Assembly: GCF_001194135.2 (NCBI RefSeq)
Contig: NC_068982.1
Coordinates: 152,162,715 to 152,226,714, forward strand
DNA: 64,000 nt
From: Octopus bimaculoides
Lineage: Eukaryota
Direction: 5' to 3'
In this document: piece after piece, positions 1 to 51,065 of the stretch
Numbering within the stretch: position 1 is the stretch's first letter
Layout: each line of letters opens with the position of its first letter
Program-made: the position numbers and the translations under genes
Notes under the pieces: generated by a model
Database searches by the model: none
The model's input: the letters and a program-made list of their open reading frames with translations, nothing else
Told to the model about the DNA's origin: nothing

Positions 1-1125
1 AGTGATTAGGTGATGAGCAGCATTGACTCAGAAAGATTATCAGAGTCATAAACTGTGTACATTGATTATATTCTGAAGATAATGACTTCAAAGAGGAGTA
101 AGGTGAGGTAGTAGATGTCTTCAAGACAGTTATGAAGCAGTTGTTGTTTAGCTCCAAATCAGCCCTGACCAGTCAGATGTATGGTCGAAGTTATTCTAAT
201 CATAGCCATTCTATCTCTTTCCTATGTACAAGCTTTTAAATATTATAGTTTTGTTCCCATTTTTATACATACCTTCTATATCAATCCCACTTCAGAAATT
301 TTATAAACAAACATTAATCAAACTCTACCTCCATAATACAGGAAGTTTAAAATCCCTATATACTAATTAAATTGCTTATAAAATAATGAACACCTTGAGA
401 GAAACATATAAACATACAACCTTTACTCAAATATTTTTGTGAACATCAAAGCACCAGAGAAATAATTTTCTATACTAACAAAGCCTTAACATACCTAACT
501 AATAACCTTAAATATCATCAAAGTAAAGACAGGACCAATGTAAACTAACTACCTACTTACATCCTTTTGAAATAAAAGATGACACACCCAATTACTAAAG
601 GCTTAAGTACCGGACTCCCATAATACCAAAAATGACAAAAATATTGTCGCACTTTGTGCCTACTAAACAGAAGAAAAATACCTGCAGGTTTGTTTACAAA
701 GTTCTACATGCATGGATAAATACTAGACAATAACATAACACTAAATTTAATCAATTAAAATTTTTTCAAGATATATTTCCATAACAACCAGCCATAAAAA
801 CCTAATTCCCATCCCACTCAAACCCATATACCCAAAGATGATTTTTAACTCAACAGAGACAATATAAAAGCAAGACTAACTGTAATGCATCAGTCTTTCA
901 GTGACTTAGCTGACCAAAACATTGAAGTCACAATCAACAACATTTTTTGTTTAAGAAATAAATGTGTGTGTGTGTGTGTGTGTTAGCCAAAACTTCAGAG
1001 TCACTATTAACACTATTCTTGTTTAAGAATAATAAATTTGGTACTCTACAAAAGTACTGAGTAACCCCTCAGATTAATGTAGAATTATCTTTTTTAGTAT
1101 AATATTAAAACTAAACATTTGAAGT

Positions 1126-1350
1126 GGTAAGCCCACAGACTCATTAGCATGCTGGACTAAATGCTTAGTGGTATTTTGCTCATCACTACGTTCTGAGTTT
1201 AAATTCTGCCAAGGTCAACTTTACCTTTCATTCTTTCAGGGTTGATCAATTAAGTACCAGTTTGAACATTGGGATCAATGTAATCGACACATCTCCCACC
1301 CCCAAATAGTTGTCCTTGTGGCAAAATTTGAAACCGTATTACAACTAAAC
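1126..1350 (+). mobile_element. tRNA-derived SINE family B, old copy
   Basis: Matches the young copy at 44027 (ttctgagtttaaattctgccaaggtcaacttt.cctttcattctttcagggttgat...aagtaccag). Confidence 0.75.
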
Positions 1351-1588
1351 ATAAAAACAAACATTAAGTTATATGTGTATGTATACATATATATATACAT
1401 AAATACATATATATATATTTATATACGTATATATGTATATATATATATATATATATATANNNNNNNNNNNNNNNNNNNNNNNNNNNNNNNNNNNNNNNNN
1501 NNNNNNNNNNNNNNNNNNNNNNNNNNNNNNNNNNNNNNNNNNNNNNNNNNNNNNNNNNNNNNNATATGTATGTATGTATATATGTATG

Positions 1589-1619
<31 letters not shown>

Positions 1620-2186
1620 CATTAGGTTTACATGAGCAGACACAAATCATATGTATATATGCACACAAGCATTCATGTATGCACATACTCAGAATTAATT
1701 AGTCACTGGTGATAATATTTATATTATGTACTCCAACACAAGAACACAAATGTATATTTATTTTACACATTTTCGTGAAAATATAATTATGTTTTTTGTA
1801 TAAACAAGATTAAAAAATTAATTATTTGTATTTTCATTCCATTACTTTCCACCAGTTTCAACAATTTTTTTATCACATATTGATTTTAACTGTTACTACT
1901 ACTTCTCTCACAGCTACGTTATTATTTCTATTTTAGAGTTAGGGTTACCCCAAAAGTAGATATCCTATAGTGTTTAGATTGATGGCTCTTTTCAGAGAGA
2001 GAGGGGGGAGACAGGGAGAGAGAGAAAGAGAGAGAATGTGTGTCTAAGCACTTTTTTGATCATTTTAGTCTGAGTGAGGACGATGGGGATTATAACCAGA
2101 TGATATTAGAACAGTTTGTGAAGAACACTGTTCTAAGAAAAACAAAGGTTAAGCATTGTTTTCTAGTACTATTGTTTAATAGTAAT

Positions 2187-2463
2187 GTTGCCAGTGCCGA
2201 TGGACTGGCTCCTGTGCAGGTGGCACGTAAAATACACCATTTTGAGCGTGGCCATTGCCAGTACTGCCTGACTGGCCTTCGTGCCGGTGGCACATAAAAG
2301 CACCCACTACACTCTCGGAGTGGTTGGCATTAGGAAGGGCATCCAGCTGTAAGAAACTCTGCCAAATCAGACTGGAGCCTGGTGTAGCCACCTGGTCCAC
2401 CAGTCCTCAGTCAAATCGTCTAACCCATGCTAGCATGGAAAGCGGACATTAGACGATGATGAT
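2187..2463 (+). mobile_element. RTE-type LINE 3' UTR copy (5'-truncated) with (GAT)n tail
   Basis: Shares cactacactc..gagtggttggc.ttaggaagggcatccagctgt...catgctagcatggaa..cggac and (GAT)n with many other copies; at 4372-4918 the same tail follows an RTE ORF end. Confidence 0.8.
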
Positions 2464-2887
2464 ATTAACTTTTACTAGTTTCAAATTCACCTTTGTTATT
2501 GTTATTTGTTATTACAGTAAATTTGCATATGAGGATCATTACACTTATGGGGAAATTTTAGTAAACTTTGCTGCAACATGCCAATTAGTAAGATTGATTT
2601 AAGCACCATCCTCCATGCCAAACAAAATGTAAAAAAATCATAATATATATTACTTGAACAATGGTTTCAAAACCATTCAAATTGAAGGTTTCCTTCATTC
2701 TTGCTGGGCCAGTGGTGTATGTAACAGCTGATCTTACCATAGTATGAAAGAGCTCAGGTAGCAAAATTTTATGTCTTCTGAAGTTAGAAACCATGTAAAA
2801 GGTCACCAAAAATATGATATACTGTGAAGCTAAAATATAGTAATTCAGACCACATGCTTTCAACTTGAATTGCAAAACCACCACAGT

Positions 2888-3040
2888 AGCTTGGATACAC
2901 TGCACAGACCAAATTACTGCTGTAAAATAGTGGAACAATTTCTAGCATCACTTGTAAGAAGTAGTAACTCAAGAATTAAACTATACCAGACGTAATCAAA
3001 GAAACTGGATATCAGGCTGAGTAACAGAATTTGTTATAAA
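2888..3040 (+). repeat. 153-bp direct duplication; partner at 4219-4371
   Basis: Near-identical ungapped match agcttggatacactgcaca...ttgttataaa, offset 1331 bp. Confidence 0.92.
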
Positions 3041-3539
3041 GTAGTGGAGCCACAATCAACTCTTGTGAAGGCAAATCATCTGTTCTGTCTATGCTTATCA
3101 CAATGAATTCTAATGTACTGCCACTCAAGATATGGAACATAATATTATTCTTAGGACTCACAAAAACTGTATCAGATTTTAGAATAAATCATGAAAGGCA
3201 ACAAGACCAATACTTCTTGATGTTTAAGGCAGTTATAGTGAAAGCTGATGATCACAGTCAATGGTGTGACCATTTTGTGAACCTATTCAATCATGATTCC
3301 TCTACTAATCAGCTGTACATGTACTCTACAGATATCATTCTCTGTGCATGCAATCCAGATGCACCAACCATCAAGGAGGTGCACTAAGCTATCTAAAATC
3401 TGAAGAACAATGTCTGAAGAGGATTTAACCATTGAAATCTTCAAAAATTGCTTAAATGTCTTGGCTCTACAGCTGCACTGTGATTTGTTTCTATGATATG
3501 GAATCTCTTCCACAAGGTTAGAGTGATGTTGGTTTCCTC

Positions 3540-3790
3540 CTTTGCTTCAAGAAGAGTAATACTTATCCACGATGAAAAATACTTCTCCAGTACTGTTCTG
3601 ACCTCATCTGCAGAATTCATATTTTTCCTATCCAAATGATTTTGAAGACTGTGGAATAAATGATAATCAGATGCTGCAATATCCAGCGAATATGGTGGGT
3701 GGGGCATCGTTGCCCATTCAAACTGTTCCAGGCTTTCACAGAAAATGCACTTTTACACTCTGTAAGATTGTCGGTGTTAAGAAGAGCATC
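3540..3790 (-). mobile_element. Mariner transposase C-terminal fragment
   Basis: Translation EQFEWATMPHPPYSLDIAASDYHLFHSLQNHL resembles the mariner HPPYSPDLAPSDYHLF motif. Confidence 0.85.
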
Positions 3791-4371
3791 CATCAATGGA
3801 AATTATGTTAAAACTGAGACATAGGAGCAAGATATGGTTCTCTAATCCATGGATTCAACAAAAATGTTGAGCTCATGCCAGTGAGGAAAATGGACTGATG
3901 ATGATAATGACGATGGCAACAACAACAACAATGAGGATACATATGTATACAGATGAACCTCTTGTAAGTACATCATACAACTTGTATGATGAACCTCTTG
4001 CCTACCAATAGCATATAAGTTGAATCTGGTGAACAAAATGATCATGCCTTTGCTAAACTAATACTTCAATGAATTAAATGCCTCATATACATATTAAAAA
4101 AAAACTAAATTCAGTCTGGATGAACAAAACTAGCTTGAATGTGACACTAGAAACTGCAACATTCCTGATACTAATTCTTAAACATAAAAATACCAAATGA
4201 CAATGATGTTGTGCAATAAGCTTGGATACACTGCACAAACTAAATTACTGCTGAAAAAGAGTGGAACAATTTCTAGCATCACTTGTAAGAAGTAGTAACT
4301 CAAGAATTAAACTATACCAGACATAATCAAAGAAACTGGATATCAGGCTGTGTAACAGAATTTGTTATAAA

Positions 4372-4918
4372 CTAAGGAGACATCAGATGTTGTGTGCAAG
4401 AGAGAAGATTACATTGGTTTGGTCATGTGATGCATATGGATGAGGACAGCTGCATAAAGTACCATGCTCTAATTGTGGAGGGAACCTGTGGAAGGGGTAG
4501 ACCCAGATAGACATGGGACGAAGTAGTGAAAAAGTATCTTTGAATGCTGGGCCTCACTGAGGAAATGACAAGGGACCAGGAGTTGTGGTGATTTACTGTA
4601 CTTGAGAAGACACGTCAAGCTAAGTAAATGATCACTGTCATCCATACATGCATGCTTGTCCTCATGTGCCAGTGCTACATAAAATGCACTCAAGCCAGTG
4701 CTGTATAAACACATCTGTTCTGGTGGCATGTAAAAAGCACCCAGAACACTCTGTAAAGTGGCTGGCATTTGGAAGGGTATCCAGCTGTGGAGACCATGTC
4801 ACAACAGTTAGTTGGGACCTTGATACTCCCTGGCTGGCCAGCTTCATGTCAAACTGTCCAACCCATGAAAACCCATAGAAAACAGATGTTAAATGATGAT
4901 GCTGATGAAGAAGATGAA
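4372..4918 (+). mobile_element. 5'-truncated RTE-clade LINE: ORF C-terminus plus 3' UTR and (GAT)n tail
   Basis: VQERRLHWFGHVMHMDED...GTCGRGRPR*TWDEVV...LTEEMTRDQELW matches the RTE RT C-terminal RLxWxGH..GRPRxxW..DRxxW pattern. Confidence 0.85.
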
Positions 4919-5787
4919 TACAAATTTAATGAGTGAATTTAACACATTATGGCAATTGAGAAACATATCTATGATTCCATTTGTAATTAGTACAACTGGA
5001 ATGATGCAGAACCACTTCTGTAATGATATTGACAGATCTCTTACAAATACAGAGAGAGGCACATTGTAAACAATATCAATACTAAGATGTTTAAATATTA
5101 TGGCATTTTTAAATGACATTGATTAACTTTTGAACTGATGTCAGTGACCAGGTCACAGTTGTGTGATTGAAAGTTTGACACCTCATGAAATAAATTAAAT
5201 TTAAAGTGATTTTAACAGTTTATGCTTAATTAAATACCCTTTTCATGATGTAGTTGCTTCAACTTCAACAAACAATCTCAGATGAAGTCACTTGCCAGAA
5301 ATTTTTATTTTTTCTAAGTTGTACTTAATTTATTTTTCAAAAATAGAAACTATTGTGTCTTCTCAAATAATAACTAGCAGGATCTATGAAAATTCTACAT
5401 TTTAAAAGTGCTCTTGTTTCTATTATGATGCATAAATTAATAGTTCTTCATAACATTTTTTCATTATGTTAATAATTTCAACTGTCTTTTATTCATTTTT
5501 TTTAGTTAGGTTTGTTGAAAGTGTAACACTTGAACTAGTTCCAAACTGTTAGAAATTTTGATTATACCTTCAATTTCAATCTACAGCTAAGATTGTTTAA
5601 GGTGTAACACATGAACTTGTTTTATTGTTTTAAAAGTTTCAATTATATTTCTGACTCCTTTCCATACTTAAAACTGTTTAATGCCTAATACTCAAAATTG
5701 TTTCAGCACGTTAAATATTTTGATTATGGTTTCAGTTTTGTCACATAGTTCAGGTTATTGAAAGCATAACTTTCAAATTTATTCCAT

Positions 5788-6053
5788 TATTCTGTTGTGT
5801 CTGGGGAGAGTCATTTTCTTATCATGCCTTAAAATTTAACACACTCACCGTTAAAATTTCCACTTATTATTTTTATTTTCCTAAAATTCTCGTTGCGTCT
5901 TGCAACCTTTTCAATAGTCAAGACTATTGAAAAGGTTGCAAGACGCAACGAAAATTTTAGGAAAATAAAAATAATAAGTGGAAATTTTAACGGTGAGTGT
6001 GTTAAATTTTAAGGCACGATAAGAAAATGACTCTCCCCAGACACAGCAGAATA
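5788..6053. repeat. Near-perfect 266-bp palindrome (132-bp arms, 2-nt centre), probable fold-back MITE
   Basis: Arms 5788-5919 and 5922-6053 are reverse complements except at three positions (5795, 5824, 5889); the outermost bases are TA on both sides. Confidence 0.95.
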
Positions 6054-7400
6054 TGCTTCAACCCACGAAATCACATAAAAAATCTTGCAAACCAAATCCA
6101 AAAATGAAATATTATTCCATTATGTTAAAGATTTTAATTTCAAAATATGATTGCAAAATAGGCTTTGATATTTATGAAAAAAAATTATGAAATAATTCTA
6201 GCAGTATTATTTGGATACATTTTTATTATACATTTTTTTTTATCATTGTGGTTGTCATGACTCCAATTTTTTAAATTTATTTTAATTTTATATTGTTAAT
6301 AAAATCCACGTGACAGATATAAATATCAAATAAAGAGCCTCATTCAGAAAAACATATATATTGCATATTTACATGAAGAAGTGCATATAATCATATATTC
6401 AATATATCAAAGATTTATTTCATAGAATTCACCCTTAAATAACCCCATCATTATATTCATCCTTAGACATTAGTACAACATTATTCAAAATAGAAATATA
6501 CTTAATCCCTAAACAAAACTGCAACTATGAAGTCTAAAAGTACATAAATATAAAATATAGGTAAATGTATTCCGCTAACATATACTCTATTCCAATTACA
6601 AACAGTTTATTCCACATTAAATATTACTTAACTTATATACTGAAATATAGACGTAAACTAATATTAATATTGACTATTATTGACAGGCAAGTATGACCAA
6701 CAAATGTGTTAAATGCAAGCATTTTAATTTTCATTTTCTCTCCAAATAATCACAGCCTTTTAAACTTATATGAATTCCATTCTTAAACATCTTGCAATCT
6801 CTCTTTCTCTCTTTTAACCACACACACTCACACATGCCTATACACACACACACACACACACACTCACACACACACACTTCAGTTGTAACCATGAAGAATT
6901 TTAGTGTGATACTGGACTGTGTTAGCCAGTATCAGAGTGGTTTGTTTGTCGGTGGCTGATTGACTATAAAAATACTTAAAATCCTCACATGCAACAAGAA
7001 ATTTGAAAAATGATAACAGAAAACCAATTAAATTTATAAATTCATTTACAAACTTGCAGGGATTAATTTCATATAACTCAAACTATTACATTTGATATAA
7101 AGTATCAAGCATTCTTACTAGGTGACCTAACCCATAAAAAAGACAAACTATTAAAATAGATTATAATACACAATTGAAAATGAACTTAGATACAAATCAG
7201 TGCTTGAAAACTCAGCAACTTATTTATAAATTTATCTATAAATTATCACAGAAGTTATATAAATAGCAGAAGTTATATAAAAGAAAAAAAAGCTCATTAC
7301 ATAAATATCATACTCTAGTAACAAACTAACTCCAGACAGCATGTCCAAGCCATTTCCTGATTACTTAGAAAGTCAGGTGGTCAGGTGAGGGGAATATTTA

Positions 7401-7928
7401 CGAGGTCTGATCAAAAAGTATCAGGACTGATGCTGTGAAAAGTAAACTACAATACGTGTCAATTTGGCATTTAGTCTCCTTCAAAGTGGTCCTCTTCTGA
7501 AGCCATAAACTTTATCCAATGACAATTCCATTGATGGGAGCATTCCTGGAACTCCTTTTTTGGGATAGCAAGCAACTGCCTCATCTCATTCTGTTTGATT
7601 CCCTTGACTTCTTGAAATTTTGTTGTAGATTTTCTGCTCTTGAAATCTCTTGAAATTTCTTGAAATCCCTTAAAATTTTTTTGATGTCTTGAAATCTTGT
7701 TGATGCAGATTCTCTGCTCAATTTTCTCTGGTATAGTCACTGATGGAATTGCTGTGGTGTGGTTTTACTTCTAAGCATTGTTACAAATAATGGAAGTGAG
7801 CTAGAGTGTTATAACTTAATGTGTGTGCATGACAGCTTACAAGGTCAATCCGTGCCAAGTGGCTTGACTCTGCATACTTTAGACCTGTTACCATGGCAAG
7901 AGTTCCAATACTTTTCGATCAGGCCTCA
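7401..7928 (-). mobile_element. Internally deleted mariner (non-autonomous), 528 bp
   Basis: TA|CGAGGTCTGATCAAAAAGTATCAGGACT ... AGTTCCAATACTTTTCGATCAGGCCTCA|TA imperfect TIRs with TA TSD; minus-strand C-terminus FQECSHQWNCHWIKFMASEEDHFEGD* resembles mariner W..RW.KC....GDYFEGD. Confidence 0.85.
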
Positions 7929-8176
7929 TAAATCCTAGTGATAACAGATGAGGTATAAGCACTTCATTGACCTCCATAATTCTTCTACCAGCAATATAAA
8001 AATGTTGATAGCAACTACTAGGATCTAAACTGTTTCATCTAGAAGGAAACTTCCTTGAAACCAAGAAATGTTATTGTTCCCAAATAAATATAAAGTCCCA
8101 AAGAACATATATGCATACATACATTGGTATATACATGGTTATATGTGTATATATGCATAACCATTATGTATGTATG

Positions 8177-8264
<88 letters not shown>

Positions 8265-8269
8265 TGTAT

Positions 8270-9025
8270 CTATCTTTCCAACCACATGATTCAGGGTTAA
8301 GGTTCCACAGCATGGCACCTTGGGCAGGTGTTTTCTACTATAGCCTTGGGCCAACCAAAGCCTCATGAGTAGATTTGGTAGACAGAAACTGAGAGAAGTC
8401 TGTCATATATATATATAGAATTAATATAAACAGTTGCGCAGAATACAATACCATAAAGGAAAAATTCAGTCATCACTAAATGTAACTAAGAGTGCTGAAA
8501 CACATACATTGCTAGAAATAGGAGTAAAATACTCCTTGTGCTGTAGGAAGAGCACAAATGTATACACATGCTGACAGGGAACAAAACATCCTCGTGACAG
8601 AGGAAGAAACCTCCCCAGAAATACATGAAACTTGACACCTAGTTTGAGAGATTCTCGATTCAATCATAGAGAGGTTTCTTCCCTCTCAGCATTTGTGTAT
8701 ACATTTGCACTCTTCCTACAGCACAAGGAGTATTTCACTCCTATTTCTAGCAATGTAGGAGTCTCAGAAGCCTTAGTCACATTTAGTGATGATTGTAATA
8801 TATATATGGTGGGAGGTATTTTTGTGTCTGTGTTTGTCTCCCACCACTGCTTGACAACCAGTTATGGTATGTTTACATCTCTGTAACATAGAGGTTTAGC
8901 AAAAGAGAGATAGAATAAGTAGCAGGCTTAAATAGCAACAAACTCTAGGGTCAATTCTTTTGGCTAAAATTCTTCAAGGTGGTGTCCCAGCATGGCCCCA
9001 GTCTAATAGTTAAAACAAGTAAAAT
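8270..9025 (+). mobile_element. SINE family C copy split by an insertion (5' half about 8270-8405, 3' half about 8820-9025)
   Basis: Both halves match the contiguous copy at 19968-20345. Confidence 0.7.
8467..8795. mobile_element. Tc1-like fold-back MITE nested in a SINE
   Basis: Ungapped arms 8470-8568 and 8694-8792 with 10 mismatches in 99 bp, plus an inner 12-bp pair (8602-8613/8671-8682); ends CAGTCATC...GATGATTG|TA, similar to Tc1 CAGT termini. Confidence 0.8.
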
Positions 9026-9066
9026 ATAAAAGATAGAGGAAATATATATATATGTTTGTATGTATG

Positions 9067-9115
<49 letters not shown>

Positions 9116-9225
9116 ACACACATACATACACACACATATACATAAGCACACAACAACATATATGCAAGTATATATATACATGACATGAATATATATAAGC
9201 ATAGACAGACAGACAGACAGACAGG

Positions 9226-9269
<44 letters not shown>

Positions 9270-9520
9270 CTTAGGCATGTCTAAATAGGTGAAAGGTTTG
9301 CTTTTCAATCATGAGGTCCCTGATGCTATATCTGGTGAACTCAAACCTTGTGAATAAAATTGTGTTGATAGAAAATGTTTTGAACTTATACCAACATCTT
9401 CACAAATTCATGGAACTATTTTGATTCAAAGACGACTTATGAGTCTGTCAGAAACTATGCTCGATTTTGAGAATTCAAATAAATCTCAAGGGACACCTTC
9501 ATGCACACATACATGTGTAC

Positions 9521-9554
<34 letters not shown>

Positions 9555-10349
9555 GTACATATCTACACACATAAATACACCTACATATATACATACATCA
9601 TATATATGTACATACAGAGAAAGGAAGATTGAGAGAATAAAATATATAAAAAGAGAGTGTATAGTAAGAAAGAAAAAGAATGAGAGTGAAGAGAATGGTG
9701 GAGGTATGAAGAATGCCTTTTTGTTTGTATGATATATGACGATAAATATATATGTTGCTATGTATTGTAACTTTTATAAATATTTTTATAAAATTGAGTG
9801 TCTACAATTCTGTCATATTTATATACAACTTAATAAATCAAGATAATTTTGTTCAATTAATTTTCAATTGAATATGTACTAATTTTCATATTCATACACA
9901 TGTGTGTGTATGTGTGTCTTTACATATTCTTCAATGTATATATGTACATATGAATGTATACTTTATATGTTAATATACTAATATATGCAGATATGTGCAG
10001 GGCACCTGTATGAACAGGTGTGGACATGCATTTGTGAATGTGTGTATGATTCTGTGTGTGTCTACCTCTCAATGTGAGAGGAATTGTTGAGTTTAAAAAT
10101 GCATCAAGGAAAGTAAAAGGAAGGTTAAAGTTTTATTCATTCCAGACTATGCTAATTTGTTTAACATATAAATGTAATCTGCTACATATATTTCCTATAT
10201 TTATTCACTAAATAAATCAATACATACATATATATTATATGCATATATATGTATATGTATATATATATATCTATATTGTACATCCTTATATTTTTTAAAG
10301 TATTATTGGTGTAGCTAGGTATAGATGTTTTGATTGTTATTATTGACAG

Positions 10350-10400
10350 CTTGCAAACATTTGTCAGGACAAGAACAACGGAAACACTCGGAGAAAAAAA
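10350..10400 (+). CDS. HCN: Candidate alternative microexon for the HCN S4-S5 linker (LANICQDKNNGNTRRKK)
   Basis: ttgattgttattattgacAG|CTT...AAA|GTAAGA; 51 nt, phase 0/0, no stop; compatible with the phase-0 start of the S5 exon at 15432. Not supported by any transcript evidence here. Confidence 0.45.
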
Positions 10401-10670
10401 GTAAGAATAATTAGATAAACAAAAATAATAAAATATCAGTAATAGTAATAATAATAATAATAATAACAACAATAATAATACATTTATATCTATTTTAGAT
10501 ATTATCTAAGAATTGTAGTATTAGCATATTTTTTATGTTTGATATTTTGGATAATATTTTATGTATAAATACTTTTTATTTCAAAATTTCATCTGCATTA
10601 TGTATATATACATATATATATATGTGTATTATATTTATTTATATATATATATATATGTATTATATTTATT

Positions 10671-10726
<56 letters not shown>

Positions 10727-11189
10727 AATAAAATGTGAATATATATATATGTATATATTATATACATATATTAATTACACACACACACATATATATGGAC
10801 ATATATATATACATGTATACACACATATATACATATACACATACATATATGTACATATATATATATATATACATATATATATGTACACACATATATATAT
10901 ATACATATATATATATACACATATACATATATNNNNNNNNNNNNNNNNNNNNNNNNNNNNNNNNNNNNNNNNNNNNNNNNNNNNNNNNNNNNNNNNNNNN
11001 NNNNNNNNNNNNNNNNNNNNNNNNNNNNNNNNNNNNNNNNNNNNNNNNNNNNNNNNNNNNNNNNNNNNNNNNNNNNNNNNNNNNNNNNNNNNNNNNNNNN
11101 NNNNNNNNNNNNNNNNNNNNNNNNNNNNNNNNNNNNNNNNNNNNNNNNNNNNNNNNNNNNNNNNNNNNNNNNNNNNNNNNNNNNNNNNG

Positions 11190-11412
11190 TACATGAAGAT
11201 GCTGAAAAGTTCCTGGTTTTGCTTAAAAGAAAATAACGAAGCATCAGTTAATTATGATTTTATCAAACATATTCCCCTCTAAGATTCACACACTTATTGG
11301 AGATGCAGCAGTCTTTCAGTTTTTTAAGCTCTGTAAAAGAACTTGGAAGGTTGGGCCTCCAACCAGGCCTTTCACAATACCCTTAAAGCCAGGAACTTTT
11401 CAGTAGCCCCTA

Positions 11413-11414
<2 letters not shown>
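11190..11414. mobile_element. Mariner-type MITE (~225 bp); second copy at 30321-30542
   Basis: TIR core CTGAAAAGTTCCTGG / CCAGGAACTTTTCAG; internal sequence shared with the 30321 copy. Confidence 0.8.
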
Positions 11415-11446
<32 letters not shown>

Positions 11447-12102
11447 GTATATATATATACATATATAAGCTTACGGTTGATGAGGGAAAATATTGTTGAC
11501 TACTAACATTTAGTGTTGAAGTGTATACCACCATCAGCTAACAATATTATCATACAATTTCACTGTGATATTGTGAAATGGTGAAATCTCATTGAAAATC
11601 TTTGCTGTCAACTCAATTCTTTTGTGACTCACTTTTTCACTTTCAAAATAAGTTGGAGATATGGAAGTGTCTTGCTGGATGCGATATTTATTGGAACTTG
11701 TTTCAATTTTTTCTTTTATTTTTTGTTCATATTGCATTCCTTTCCATTTATTTCCTATTGTTAGTTTAAAATTACATACTTGCATTTCTGACCATCATTC
11801 AAAGCTTGCTACATCCATTCCACCCATTGTGAAGACATTTAACTCTGCCTCAGCAACAATAGTTGTTAGCTTGTTGACAAACCTCAACACTCATTAATTG
11901 TTTAAGCTAAGAATATGAAAAATATATATCAAATAGAAAAAAAAAATGCTCATATTTATGCAACTATCTTTTTTTAAAAGAATAATATTTTATCCATTCT
12001 AGCATGGAACAAATGTATGCAAATATATGTATAGACATGTATGTTTGCATATCAATGTATCTATCTCTCTCTTTATATATATATATATATAAATATGTAT
12101 GT

Positions 12103-12434
12103 CAGTCAGGCGGTATATATATATACCGCCTGACTGGCCTTTGTAGGGTTTTCGAGCGAGATCGTTGCCAGTGCCCCTGGACTGGCTCTTGTGCGGGTGG
12201 CACATGAAAGACACCATTTCGAGCGTGGCCGTTTTCGTGCGGGTGACACGTAAAAGCACCCACTACACTCTCTGAGTGGTTGGCGTTAGGAAGGGCATCC
12301 AGCTGTAGAAACTCTGCCAAATTAGATTGGAGCCTGGTGTTGCCATCCGGTTTCATAAGTCCTCAGTCAAATCGTCCAACCCATACTAGCATGGAAGGCG
12401 GACGTTAAACGATGATGATGATGATGATGATGAT
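12103..12434 (+). mobile_element. Young RTE 3' UTR copy with a palindromic 5' junction
   Basis: CpG-rich, nearly identical to 31271-31549; (GAT)n tail. Confidence 0.85.
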
Positions 12435-12610
12435 CTCAAACTCTTACAATTTGTATATGAAAGAGGAAGATAGTACTCAATAAGCAGCTGGGATGTATTT
12501 ANNNNNNNNNNNNNNNNNNNNNNNNNNNNNNNNNNNNNNNNNNNNNNNNNNNNNNNNNNNNNNNNNNNNNNNNNNNNNNNNNNNNNNNNNNNNNNNNNNN
12601 NNNNNNNNNN

Positions 12611-12655
<45 letters not shown>

Positions 12656-13147
12656 TTGAAATTTATAGTAAAACAAAAGACAAAGATAGGTGTATGAAAA
12701 ACAGGTGTATATATGTATGTTTATATGTACATGTGTGTGAGTAAGTGTGTATTTATACATATACACATACATATATATACATACAAACATATATATACAT
12801 CTATGCATACACATACACACACACACATATATATATACATATAGATATAGATAATGTTACACTTTATGTGTGTATATGTATATGTGTGCGTGTGCATTTC
12901 TCATTTTCTACTGATGATTGAGTTTAGCTTTATTGTAAGATATGTGAAACATGCCAGTAGATTAATGTTCCAGTGTTATTTTAAATTATTCACATTTCCA
13001 CCAAAAGGATGTACTGAGCAAGTTTGTATTTTGCATTAATGCATTAACAAAATATTTGCATGTGTGTGTATCTGCTTGAATATATCTGGGTGTATATGTA
13101 TGTCTACACATACAAATACACACACTTATACACACACACACACACAC

Positions 13148-13196
<49 letters not shown>

Positions 13197-14204
13197 GCAC
13201 ATACACACATGCATATACATGTATGCGTATGTGTGTGTGTGCGCGTTAGTGTGTGAGTGTATTTGCATGTGTGTGTGTGTGTGCATACAATTATGTGCAG
13301 TTAAGAATAGCAATATGTAACTTTATATTTATTTTCATTTGAAAAGGCATTTCAAAACGACCAGTTTTGAGTCTAAATTCATTTAGATATGTTTTATATC
13401 ATTTTATCTTTTGTAACTACAACTCATATTCTCTCATATACATCTATTCATGCAAATATATAAACTAATACATACATACATATACACACAAAACACACAC
13501 ACATACAATCACAAACACGCACACATACACACACGTTTATAGAATGCACAAGTACACTTGTACATATATATAGTTTATGATCTTTGCATTAAGCTACGCT
13601 TTCTATCAGTCCACATGTGCTATATATATGAATGAAAATTTTTAATTACAAGTGATATGGCTTCTGATTTTGAGGTATTTCATTAATCTGCAATTTGCAC
13701 TAGAGGCTTCCATATCACTTATATGACTGTAAGAGGGGAATCTTACACACACACATGCATATATAGATGGATGCATGTATGTTTTCAAAGATGTGTAAAT
13801 ACATGTATACATATCCATTTAGGCGTGTGTGTGTGTGTGTGTGTGTGCATGCACACAGGTGTGTGTATGTGTGCATGTGCACAAGTGTGTATGTGTGTGT
13901 AGCACTTCTTAGTATCACAATAAATCATTTACTTTACATAATTACATATTGAGTCTTCATTTAAACTATGGTCTTCTCAGATCTATACTGGCCATATTCC
14001 GCAGACAAATACCAATATGTTAAAATGCTTACAGGAAAAATTTATGATTTTTTAAAATCATTTCTCTCATTAGAGGACGTATCATAATTACCAAAGGGTA
14101 ATTATGACCAGCTCCACTTGAAAAGGGGAGAAAATCTTAAGATTAAAAATTAAAAATCCCCCATAATTAACGTCATTAAGGAAAGGGACAGGCTTTAGAG
14201 AGAG

Positions 14205-14260
14205 GACAGTTGTGGACACATGTCTCTGGCTCAACAGACTTCATCAGCAAGACAATTGTC
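14205..14260 (-). ncRNA. Degenerate type I hammerhead-like relic
   Basis: Minus strand: gacaattgtcttg CTGATGA agtc tgttg agcc a GAGAC atgt GTC cacaactgtc. CUGAUGA box intact, GAAAC box mutated, stem II weak, stem I partly complementary. Confidence 0.35.
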
Positions 14261-14441
14261 CCACCATATTTCCAGCAGCCAAAGGACTTAGGCTTATGCA
14301 AGACAAAGTAGAAAACAGTAATAGCCTAGCATTTCAACAAAATGATCTAAGAGAAATAATTGGTCAGTGGCATGTATTTGACTTACATAGACAAATACCA
14401 GTATGTTAAATAACTTATAACAAAATCCTCTAGAGGATATC

Positions 14442-14489
<48 letters not shown>

Positions 14490-15431
14490 TCAATAAGATT
14501 CATATCTTATAACTGGAATCAAAAACTTTTAGTTTAATGTGTCGATTATTTCTTAACTACATGAATTTGATTACAAAATTAATGTTAAAGATAACAAGAT
14601 ATTTATATGCTCATGTGTGACAAGTTAATATATAAACTATTCTAAGGAATCTGAAGTTGTCTAACCTCTCAGCAGAGCAAAGTGAAGATATTTCAGTATC
14701 TTATCAGTTAGGATTTTGTTGGTTATATATTCATTTGTGTTCCATTCCTCATGGCCAACTATTATTGATGATAAGGAAGAGAAGAATAGTCACAGAAACA
14801 TTTCTGGGTCCAAGAAGTTTACTAAAAAGTTAATAAATGCATTTGTCACAGACCCAACTTATTTTCGATTAGTTGTAGAGCATATGACTTGATGAGATGA
14901 ATTAAGATGTGCTTTATAAGGTTTATGTGAGTCTAAGTACCACACACCTGTATATGTGTGTGCAAAGTGCAGTTATTCTTATAAAAATAAATACTCTCTT
15001 CATTCCAAATGTACTGAGTTCTTTCCTGAATTGTAGTTTCCCTAACCATGCAGTTATATGTACATATAAGTGTGCATATGTGTATACATACACACACATA
15101 TACATAGACACACATGATATGTATATCCATATATGCACACAAACACACATATACATACATGCACACAAACATACATAGACACACTTTCCATAAATATCCT
15201 ATAATATAGTCAATTACCAAACTGCATGAATAGCCTGTTTATTTTCTTATTCCAGCATGTCTTAGAATATAATGGTTTGTTCTCTCCTATTTTGCTATTA
15301 TAGTGTTATTTTGGCAGATCTTTATTACTTTTTTTTTTTTACATTTATTTCTCTTCTTTATTTCTGGAGACACAGTGTAATTTGACAAAAATCACTACTG
15401 AAAAATAATTTTATTTCTTTTGTAATTTCAG

Positions 15432-15581
15432 TTCTTAGCGCTGGCTGGCAAGTTTATGCGAATATTTAACTTGATATGCCTGATGTTCCTGCTTGGTCAC
15501 TGGAACGGTTGCCTGCAGTTCCTCGTGCCCATGTTGCAAGATTTCCCCAAAGATTGTTGGGTGTCCATTGAAGAATTGCAG
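15432..15581 (+). CDS. HCN: HCN/Ih channel exon: end of S4-S5 linker, S5, turret ([50 protein letters not shown])
   Basis: ttttgtaatttcAG acceptor, CAG|GTCAGG donor, 150 nt open; [14 protein letters not shown] motif typical of HCN S5; joins the next exon in frame (ELQ|EAHW). Absent from the ORF track. Confidence 0.95.
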
Positions 15582-25252: not shown

Positions 25253-25471
25253 GAAGCACATTGGGCTGAGCAATATACTTGGGCTCTTTTCAAGGCTTTA
25301 TCACACATGCTGTGTATAGGGTATGGCCGGTTTCCACCGCAGAATATGACTGATACCTGGCTCACAATTCTTAGTATGCTTAGTGGCGCCACCTGCTACG
25401 CACTATTCCTAGGTCACACGACAACACTTATACAGTCTTTTGACACATCAAGACGACTCTACAACGAAAAG
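25253..25471 (+). CDS. HCN: HCN/Ih channel exon: pore helix, CIGYG selectivity filter, S6 ([25 protein letters not shown]...SRRLYNEK)
   Basis: Pyrimidine tract plus tAG acceptor; AAG|GTAATT donor; 219 nt, phase 0/0; SHMLCIGYG is the HCN filter signature. Confidence 0.97.
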
Positions 25472-30073: not shown

Positions 30074-30220
30074 TTTAAACAAGTAGAGGAATATATGGTG
30101 TGTCGCAAACTGCCTCGAACACTTCGTCAGCGTATTTCCGATTATTATGAACATCGGTTCCAAGGGAAAATGTTTGATGAAGATACCATCCTTGGTGAAT
30201 TAAACGAATGCTTACGGCAG
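30074..30220 (+). CDS. HCN: HCN/Ih channel exon: C-linker ([49 protein letters not shown])
   Basis: tttgttttAG acceptor; CAG|GTAAGT donor; 147 nt, phase 0/0; KQVEEYM...YYEHRxQGKMFDE C-linker motif. Confidence 0.97.
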
Positions 30221-31270: not shown

Positions 31271-31549
31271 TTCGAGCGAGATCGTCGCCAGTGCCCCTGG
31301 ACTGGCTTGTGCGGGTGGCACATAAAAGACACCATTTCGAGCGTGGCCGTTTTCGTGCGGGTGACACGTAAAAGCACCCACTACACTCTCTGAGTGGTTG
31401 GCATTAGGAAGGGCATCCAGCTGTAGAAACTCTGCCAAATTAGACTGGAGCCTGGTGTTGCCATCCGGTTTCACCAATCCTCAGTCAAATCGTCCAACCC
31501 ATGCTAGCATGGAAAGCGGACGTTAAACGATGATGATGATGATGATGAT
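31271..31549 (+). mobile_element. Young RTE 3' UTR copy ending about 95 bp before the CNBD exon acceptor
   Basis: Nearly identical to the 12.1-kb copy; (GAT)n tail. Confidence 0.85.
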
Positions 31550-31645: not shown

Positions 31646-31889
31646 GAAGTTATAAACCACAACTGCAGATCTTTGGTTGCTTCAGTACCATTCTTTACAA
31701 ACGCAGATCCACAGTTTGTTTCTGAGGTAGTCAGTAAGCTCAAATATGAAGTGTTTCAGCCTGGTGACTATATAATTCGAGAAGGAACAATTGGGACGAA
31801 GATGTATTTTATACAAGAGGGAATAGTTGATATTATAACAAAGGAAGGTGAAGTTGCTACGAGCCTCTCGGACGGATCTTATTTTGGCG
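31646..31889 (+). CDS. HCN: HCN/Ih channel exon: end of C-linker and CNBD beta-roll ([17 protein letters not shown]...SLSDGSYFG)
   Basis: tacAG acceptor; GGCG|GTGAGA donor; 244 nt, ends in phase 1; [20 protein letters not shown] and DGSYFG motifs. Confidence 0.97.
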
Positions 31890-41320: not shown

Positions 41321-41577
41321 TGTGCAGGTGGCACGTAAAAAACTTTCATTTTGAGCGTGGCCGTTGCCAGTACCGCCTGACTGGCCCTCATGCCAGTGGC
41401 ACGTAAAAGTACCCACTACACTCTCAGAGTGGTTGGCGTTAGGAAGGTCATCCAGCTGTAGAAACTCTGCCAGATCAGATTGGAGCCTGGTGCAGCCTTC
41501 TGGTTCGCCAGCCCTCAGTCAAATTGTCCAACCCGTGCTAGCATGGAAGGCAGACGTTAAACAATGATGATGATGAT
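41321..41577 (+). mobile_element. RTE 3' UTR copy
   Basis: Same tail and (GAT)n end as the other copies. Confidence 0.8.
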
Positions 41578-49545: not shown

Positions 49546-51065
49546 AAATTTGTCTTCTTACTAATGCGAAACGTGTGGCAAGTGTTCGATCTGAGACTTA
49601 CGTGAATTTATATTCATTGTCAGTAGAACACTTCAATGCAGTCCTCGACAACTACCCAGTAATGAGACGAACAATGGAAAGTGTAGCTGCCGAGAGACTT
49701 TCAAAGATTGGCAAAAATCCTAGTATTGTCAGCAGTCGTGCTGATTTGGAAGAGGATCAAAAATTAGTTAATGAGATTGTCATGGAGTCTACCCCCATTC
49801 CCACCAGTGCTAGCGAAGATGAAGATAGAGAATCTGATGACAGTTATGAAACGAAACCTAAAAAGAAATTCAAGTTTGATTTTCCTCTAACTCTTCAGAA
49901 AATAACTGAAGAGCGAAAGTCAAAATCAAAAGAGAACCTTGCTAGAATGGCTGGTGATGATAGGGACGACTATAGGCCATCAAATATCTTTAGCAGGTTA
50001 CCCAAAGTGCATTCTGGGTCAAATCTTTTTGGTTTAAGAGTTCCCCAAATGCCTGATCGTAAAAGAACTGGTAGTTGCGGAGATGTTTTAGGAATCATCA
50101 GTGAAACGAACAAGGACATTAAAGAATCAAAGGATGAAAAGATGTCTCCAGAAAAGAAAATGAAGGATGATAAAGAGAAGGAAGATAAGGAAGAGAAAGA
50201 AAAAGATAAGACAAAAGAAAAAGAACACGAGAAAGAATCAGAAAAGGAGAAAGAGTCGGAGAAAGAGAAGGAGGAGAAAGAGAAAGACAAAGACAAGGAA
50301 AAACATCAATACCACCATCACCACCATCATTCCATTGTGAAAGATGATAAATGTCGTGAACGTAAACCAATTTTAAAGCAAACTTCTCAAGAAGACAAGA
50401 AAGAGCACTGTTCTACCGATGAAGATGGTAATAATGAGAGAAAAAAACCAAGTTATTTGGAAAAAAAGTTAAAATTAACTGATGGGTCAAGTCGAGATCA
50501 CAAAGCTCGCAAATATAGAGAACGTAAGACTCCAAGTCTGGATGAAAGGTCAGTGACTTTTGAAAGCAGACCTGGTATGCAATATTTGAAACTTCCTGGA
50601 GACTCTGGAGTTTCTTCTGATAAAATCAAAGGAAAAGTATCTGAATTATCAAAAGAGCAAAGACCTAGATCAAAGAGTGTAGATATTAAAAGTAAAACGC
50701 TGGACCAAAAAACTGAGAAAAAGGATGATAAAGAAAAAGAGAAAGATGACAAAGAAAAAGAAAAAGAAAAAGAGCAGGACAAATCAGAAAAATTAGATAA
50801 ATCTTCAAATGGTAAATTTCAGGAGAGTAAGACAGAAAAGACTAATGTTGAAAAATCTTCTGATGAAAAAACAGAAAAATCAGCAACGAAGGCAAAACCA
50901 GCAGCACCGGTCAGTGAACAGAGAACTGGCAGGATAAGTCCCAGTAAAGCAAAACCAATTACTGGTGAAGTTAAAGTAGAAAAACCAACTATAGGAAAAT
51001 TAATAACCTTAGATATTAAGAAACCTGGTGAAGAATATCCAGATTCTAAAGAATCTCCAGTTTAG
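49546..51065 (+). CDS. HCN: HCN/Ih channel terminal exon: phosphate-binding cassette, B/C helices, long charged C-tail ending ESPV*
   Basis: ttcAG acceptor; G+AA completes Glu of [17 protein letters not shown]; open to TAG at 51063-51065 (1520 nt). The HCN-like part is certain; that the whole tail is one exon is inferred from the uninterrupted ORF. Confidence 0.93.

Follow-up and report, generated by a model that had tools for sequence, protein, structure and literature searches.

A candidate 51-nt microexon in the S4–S5 intron of an Octopus bimaculoides HCN channel gene is probably an unused pseudo-exon

The stretch of Octopus bimaculoides DNA analysed here (64 kb, referred to below as the window) contains five exons of a gene encoding an HCN channel, all of them on the + strand (Table 1). 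The exons were placed by tblastn using human HCN1, which served as a probe only, and the HCN protein of Lottia gigantea (XP_009054816, taken from the S1 table of PMC4640657). The S5 exon is 96% identical to residues 273–322 of the Lottia protein. The last coding exon continues past the CNBD into a tail of about 440 residues, strongly enriched in K, E, D and S, in which six histidines occur in a row. No S1–S4 exons were found in the window with the human HCN1, Lottia HCN and S4-peptide probes. In the absence of an S4 exon, the window must begin inside the S4–S5 intron, which therefore exceeds 15.4 kb.

The window also contains a GC-rich and CpG-rich short interspersed repeat, present in about ten copies that are up to 97% identical (12105–12362, 2187–2346, 31271–31420, 41388–41455 and others); a pseudo-exon at 12147–12242, which scores better than the candidate discussed below, derives from this repeat. 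Microsatellites of the TA, CA and TAA types are very abundant and give rise to many sub-threshold Rfam matches to 'mir-297/466'. Assembly gaps (runs of N) are found at 1460–1563, 10933–11188, 12502–12610 and elsewhere. Transposase-like ORF fragments lie on both strands between 3040 and 3752; the minus-strand ORF at 3444–3752, which reads ...PPYSLDIAASDYHLFHSLQNHL, appears to resemble the C-terminus of a mariner-type transposase.

Table 1. Exons of the HCN gene, the candidate microexon and its putative splice sites, and the microexons at related molluscan loci. Locations are window positions unless a locus is named; a slash marks an exon boundary.
Feature	Location	Strand	Remarks
Putative 3' splice site	10330–10349	+	ttgattgttattattgacAG; possible branch point TTGAT, A at −17; T-rich, interrupted tract
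Candidate 51-nt cassette microexon	10350–10400	+	LANICQDKNNGNTRRKK; net charge +4; most probably a pseudo-exon that is not used
Shorter in-frame version, 33 nt	10368–10400	+	DKNNGNTRRKK; internal ttgtcAG; acceptor score −1.02, poor
Putative 5' splice site	10401–10406	+	AAA/GTAAGA; PWM 5.62; 6/9 matches to CAG/GTAAGT
HCN S5 exon	15432–15581	+	150 nt, phase 0/0; tttcAG/TTC TTA GCG ... CAG/GTCAGG; starts FLALAGKF
HCN pore/S6 exon	25253–25471	+	tblastn
HCN C-linker exon	30074–30220	+	tblastn
HCN CNBD exon	31646–31889	+	tblastn; phase 1 at end
HCN last coding exon	49546–51065	+	tblastn; CNBD end and long K/E/D-rich tail
L001 microexon	L001:3008–3058		ttaccag/TTTGAAGGCGGCCCTTGCTTGAGCCTCATTTCTTGCGGCAAGAAAACACCG/gtgagt = FEGGPCLSLISCGKKTP; 51 nt
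L002 microexon	L002:2966–3016		conserved ccAG / GTGAGT sites
L003 microexon	L003:894–938		ttgccag/TTTGAAGGCGGTCCTTGCCTATGCCTTTTTGGCAAGAAAACACCG/gtgagt = FEGGPCLCLFGKKTP; 45 nt

The start of the S5 exon had been proposed in a preliminary description of this DNA as the S4–S5 linker junction, and both its phase (0) and its match to Lottia confirm that assignment. In other lophotrochozoans S4 has an exon of its own, about 105 nt long, which ends ...QWEE in phase 0 at all nine of the loci that show it (the S4-exon loci inspected include L005:4887–4994, L007:5133–5240, L031, L054, L074, L075, L077 and L084). The donor that follows is GT at each of the nine loci except L031, where the intron starts with GC (GAAGAG/GCATGT). 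Given the phase-0 start of S5 and the phase-0 ends of S4, a 51-nt exon in this intron would place its 17 residues precisely where S4 meets S5, and the candidate would leave the frame of the exons on either side intact, as judged from the S5 exon of the window and from the S4 phase at the nine other lophotrochozoan loci. The gene models of Lottia and Helobdella (P0064) carry extra residues ('VC' and 'DIGQ', respectively) that are not obviously encoded at the S4-exon loci; they may be model artefacts or may reflect alternative splice sites.

The candidate is separated by 5 kb from the S5 exon downstream of it and sits within approximately 160 nt of unique sequence that has a (TA)n microsatellite on one side and a (TAA)n microsatellite on the other, and it is followed by an A-rich run. 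Its 17 codons (CTT GCA AAC ATT TGT CAG GAC AAG AAC AAC GGA AAC ACT CGG AGA AAA AAA) encode LANICQDKNNGNTRRKK. The sequence ttattgacAG stands directly before them and GTAAGA directly after, and the frame that is open across them is closed tightly by a TGA at 10344 and a TAA at 10416. Read directly, the sequence thus agrees with the stop-free 17-codon reading first proposed for these 51 nt, with ..gacAG before it and GTAAGA after it, and it also contains the second in-frame version of 33 nt that had been reported to start at an internal ttgtcAG. Use of either acceptor as a recursive splice site was rejected by inspection, as splicing to 10350 or 10368 regenerates no GT donor.

The splice and frame signals of the candidate are real but weak and common. 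No AG intervenes between the putative branch-point adenine and the acceptor, so that the AG and GT that an exon needs are in place, together with a possible branch point. Splice-site strength was scored with a generic position weight matrix (PWM) of approximate frequencies, and the scores are accordingly rough: the acceptor reaches 1.17, under all five real acceptors in the window (2.5–7.3), and the donor reaches 5.62 bits, under all four real donors (6.3–13.0), and carries A, not G, at position −1. The donor had been called strong, a description that does not hold for a site scoring below every real donor in the window. Sites of this quality are frequent in the intron, as about 5% of the AG and GT dinucleotides in positions 1–15431 score at least as well (42 of 781 AG sites for the acceptor and 40 of 819 GT sites for the donor). 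By the generic matrix both sites therefore fall outside the range of authentic exons, but the acceptor of the conserved molluscan microexon described below scores lower still, and a weak acceptor score does not, for that reason, disqualify a microexon.

The open frame is no evidence for an exon, because 37% of intronic 51-mers (21,360 of 58,252) are stop-free in a fixed frame. Within positions 1–15431 there are 24 AG..GT pairs, 9–150 nt in length, in which both sites score at least as high as those of the candidate; four of the 24 are both a multiple of three in length and stop-free, and among those four the sites of the candidate are the weakest. These counts argue for the reading that we consider the most probable, at roughly 0.65, namely that the candidate is a chance intronic pseudo-exon in the HCN S4–S5 intron and that it is not used. 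Chance would have supplied an upstream AG, a downstream GTAAG and, between them, 17 codons free of stops in a phase that suits the neighbouring exons; the stretch would be spliced out as part of the intron, and the channel would gain nothing from it. The ease with which comparable decoys arise also weighs against a genuine exon. However, all three better-scoring decoys fall within repeats or transposon-like sequence (one of them is present ten times in the window), and the candidate is single-copy. When these counts are combined with the compositional measures given below, roughly 0.1–0.15 equal look-alikes would be expected in the intron segment, and the candidate is modestly better than chance; as the criteria were chosen post hoc, the figure is suggestive only.

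The composition of the candidate likewise sits less comfortably with a pseudo-exon. Its GC content is 0.39 and it retains two CpGs, whereas the adjoining 200 nt on either side have GC contents of 0.20 and 0.145 and zero CpG, which substantiates the earlier remark that a CpG-retaining island stands here in an AT-rich intron. Across the window, the observed-to-expected CpG ratio is 0.24 in introns (6 CpG per kb) versus 0.75 in the HCN exons (34 per kb), and 3.3% of intronic 51-mers combine a GC content of at least 0.39 with at least two CpGs. With codon log-odds derived from the HCN gene's own exons, the candidate scores +4.5, which falls in the top 3.7–4.7% of stop-free intronic 51-mers. The candidate is also purine-rich, as enhancer-rich exons are. 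It resembles intronic pseudo-exons in its sub-exon site scores, in the abundance of similar pairs in the same intron and in having no support outside the window, but in CpG content and codon usage it comes closer to exons than at least 95% of intronic windows do.

A short patch of higher GC content between microsatellites, followed by an A-rich run as at the 3' ends of retroposons, could also be an island of another kind, such as a small RNA encoded in the intron or a piece of a mobile element. We regard this as very improbable. An Rfam search of 10290–10440 returned no overlapping family, the nearby matches being sub-threshold and to microsatellites, and the folding energy of the region is the same as that of shuffled sequences on both strands (z of 0.0 and −0.3), with no stable fold; the non-coding RNA reading was rejected on these grounds. 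There is no second copy in the 64 kb, and the reading as a repeat copy was rejected within the window.

Features of regulated neural microexons were also sought. Srrm3/4-dependent neural microexons are at most 51 nt in length and have a UGC motif a short way upstream of the acceptor. The candidate has exactly the limiting length, and no TGC occurs within the 60 nt upstream of its acceptor; the Rbfox motif GCATG does not occur within 500 nt of it. The lack of these motifs nearby favours a pseudo-exon and counts against a real cassette exon. Splicing signals that are weak yet usable would also suit a cryptic exon, that is, splicing noise of the sort that long introns commonly yield: the candidate would then appear in few of the transcripts, unconserved and without a selected function, and since the insert preserves the frame it would escape nonsense-mediated decay. 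On this account the CpG retention and codon-like composition would be coincidence, and we judge it improbable.

Counterparts of the candidate were sought in other genomes and proteins. A query joining the microexon to the S5 exon matched 54 genomic exon-ORFs in a collection of 5.8 billion proteins, none of which carries the insert; the collection evidently does not contain spliced HCN products of this species. An antisense ORF that spans the candidate has no relatives among the proteins searched. In an exact look-up, none of three ORFs from the window was recorded in the protein collection, which indicates that the O. bimaculoides genome is absent from it. The absence of any protein joining the candidate peptide to the S5 exon is in the direction expected of a pseudo-exon, but such database negatives weigh little, because neither transcripts of this species nor its close relatives are in the collections. 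A degenerate DNA pattern (NGNTRRKK followed by GTAAG) gave no match in the JGI metagenomes.

At the DNA level, 84 related loci were compared, of which 80 are metagenome loci carrying the S5 exon. The closest of the 84 has 81% identity within the S5 exon, and none of the introns could be aligned to the window. The complete S4–S5 introns of two molluscs (L005/L006, 2388 nt, and L007, 1310 nt) and of six annelid loci (460–2184 nt) contain no peptide resembling LANICQDK. No conserved intronic island was detected with blastn and tblastx between L005 and L007 or among the six annelid introns, and the 10 kb upstream of S5 in L001–L003 contain no counterpart of the candidate. Deep conservation of the candidate is not supported by these sequence comparisons. 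The suggestion that it is a molluscan counterpart of the arthropod inserts, whether by homology or by conservation across molluscs, consequently finds no support: the two molluscs and six annelids are without a counterpart, and the microexon present in L001 and L003, the one conserved microexon found in this intron, is unrelated in sequence.

This second microexon was found by comparing two related molluscs from ENA metagenome assemblies (L001/L002 and L003; ENA samples ERZ25073280, ERZ25073285 and ERZ25069866), the exons of which are 85–88% identical in DNA. A single non-exonic block is conserved between them in 20 kb, 7.0–9.1 kb upstream of the S5 exon, and it lies inside the S4–S5 intron because the S4 exon of these loci is more than 10 kb upstream. 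Within the block the identity is 80%; more than 20 nt upstream of it or 10 nt downstream of it, the value is about 52%. The two versions of the microexon are both multiples of three in length and open in phase 0; their lengths differ by an in-frame 6-nt indel, and three of the codon differences are synonymous and two non-synonymous. The donor (CCG/GTGAGT) is strong, while the PWM score of the acceptor is below that of the acceptor in the window. The block thus shows the pattern normally seen in conserved cassette exons and, judged by sequence, is a candidate for one, at the position proposed for the octopus exon but unrelated to it. We know of no description in the literature of a mollusc HCN microexon of this type.

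The likeness between the two microexons is one of position and form. Both lie in the S4–S5 intron, have lengths that are multiples of three and are compatible with phase 0; the L001 version is also 51 nt long, both peptides have basic ends (..GKKTP in L001/L003 and ..RRKK in the window), and both lie some kilobases upstream of the S5 exon (7–9 kb and 5 kb, respectively). They differ in the kind of support, since the L001/L003 microexon is backed by conservation across species whereas the candidate is known from the sequence of one genome. Between FEGGPCLSLISCGKKTP (L001) and LANICQDKNNGNTRRKK (window) there is no detectable similarity, and neither is found in the locus of the other: searches of the window for the L001/L003 microexon with tblastn and blastn gave chance matches only, and the candidate shows no homology to FEGGPCL..GKKTP. 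The L001/L003 microexon was also not found in L005–L007 or in the annelids. Its existence in the same intron, in the same size class and with an acceptor that scores lower still, nevertheless counts against dismissing the candidate as a pseudo-exon. As we see it, the L001/L003 microexon raises the prior for optional exons in the S4–S5 intron of mollusc HCN genes and says nothing directly about the octopus stretch itself.

The reading put forward in the preliminary description, that the candidate is a real, lineage-specific alternative cassette exon, is best weighed against the arthropod channels that suggested it. That description names the Ih genes of bee, Drosophila and spiny lobster as alternatively spliced in the S4–S5 linker, with basic inserts that alter voltage dependence. 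The arthropod insert, given there as ILQNLQKK..RR, may bear a loose resemblance to LANICQDK..RRKK, which was treated as a lead only. In arthropod genomic ORFs the S5 exon reads ..CAG/FLNMASVFMRIF and starts at CAG/TTC (FLNMASVF). The arthropod S5 exon and that of the window share this phase-0 CAG/TTC boundary, and the candidate lies in the intron that precedes F(L/I)xxA..FMRIF. An arthropod S4–S5 insert was not recovered from the insect loci L085 and L086, which are without an S4 exon, and nothing similar was found in L087; nor do the reference isoforms listed in PMC4640657 S1 carry an S4–S5 insert. For Drosophila the proposed precedent stands: according to PMC4382183 (citing Gisselmann 2005), the S4–S5 loop is not equally long in all splice variants of Ih. 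As the candidate would, these variants place optional residues between S4 and S5 in the same gene family, but they are known from cDNA whereas the candidate comes from genomic sequence alone.

If the candidate were a real exon, its inclusion would place 17 mostly polar and basic residues (net +4) between ...QWEE, at the cytoplasmic end of S4, and FLALAGKF, at the start of S5, and the S4–S5 turn would be lengthened beside residues that contact the C-linker. In HCN channels, voltage sensing is still coupled to gating without a covalent S4–S5 link, and the linker residue D290 contacts K412 of the C-linker on activation (PMC10317503). By alignment, the insert would precede the residues equivalent to T288–D290 of human HCN1. 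As a broken linker is tolerated and D290 makes this contact, a basic loop at that point would likely be tolerated and would likely modulate gating; voltage dependence or kinetics might be shifted, possibly through lipids of the inner leaflet. The exact fit of phase and position, the exon-like composition of a single-copy sequence, the variable S4–S5 loop of Drosophila Ih and the independent conserved microexon of 45 or 51 nt in the same intron of L001/L003 all speak for a real exon, and the last two also detract from the pseudo-exon reading. With splice sites weaker than all of the real sites in the window and no counterpart in the other lophotrochozoans examined, however, we consider a real exon rather unlikely.

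A chance pseudo-exon accordingly remains our preferred reading, and as matters stand the candidate mainly illustrates how frame-preserving mini-exons arise by chance in long AT-rich introns. Were the candidate instead to prove real, it would be an exon missed by annotation, and a cephalopod would gain a second isoform of a pacemaker channel, altered where voltage sensing passes to the gate; natural length variants at this point are rare and mechanistically informative. The conserved microexon of L001/L003 is the firmer lead, and it makes inserts in the S4–S5 linker of invertebrate HCN channels directly testable.

A wider proposal would be that small optional exons arose several times over in the S4–S5 intron of protostome HCN genes (the 51 nt in the window as the cephalopod case, the FEGGPCL..GKKTP microexon of L001/L003 and the Drosophila variants), each adding a short, basic-ended loop where voltage sensor and pore join that would retune pacemaker gating in particular cells. 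We think this unlikely as it stands.

The same region of protostome HCN channels appears to be diversified by splicing in another way. The locus L043 contains two tandem S5-type exons (8854–9003 and 10001–10150) about 1 kb apart, and in the arthropod and annelid genomic ORFs P0055–P0063, which include Lamellibrachia satsuma, tandem S5 exons are split by a short stop-free intron. From their sequences these look like mutually exclusive S5 exons, which would likewise vary the S4–S5/S5 region. Genes of this kind would swap one exon for another, whereas the window has a single S5 exon and the candidate would be an insertion. The compact, arthropod-like HCN gene at L087 (GCA_012066115.1, JAAALH010000477.1) has an S4–S5 intron of 5 kb, by far the longest in that gene, and its S4 exon (L087:4689–4967) ends RYVSTLESH/GTAAGT in place of the usual RYVSQWEEVY.
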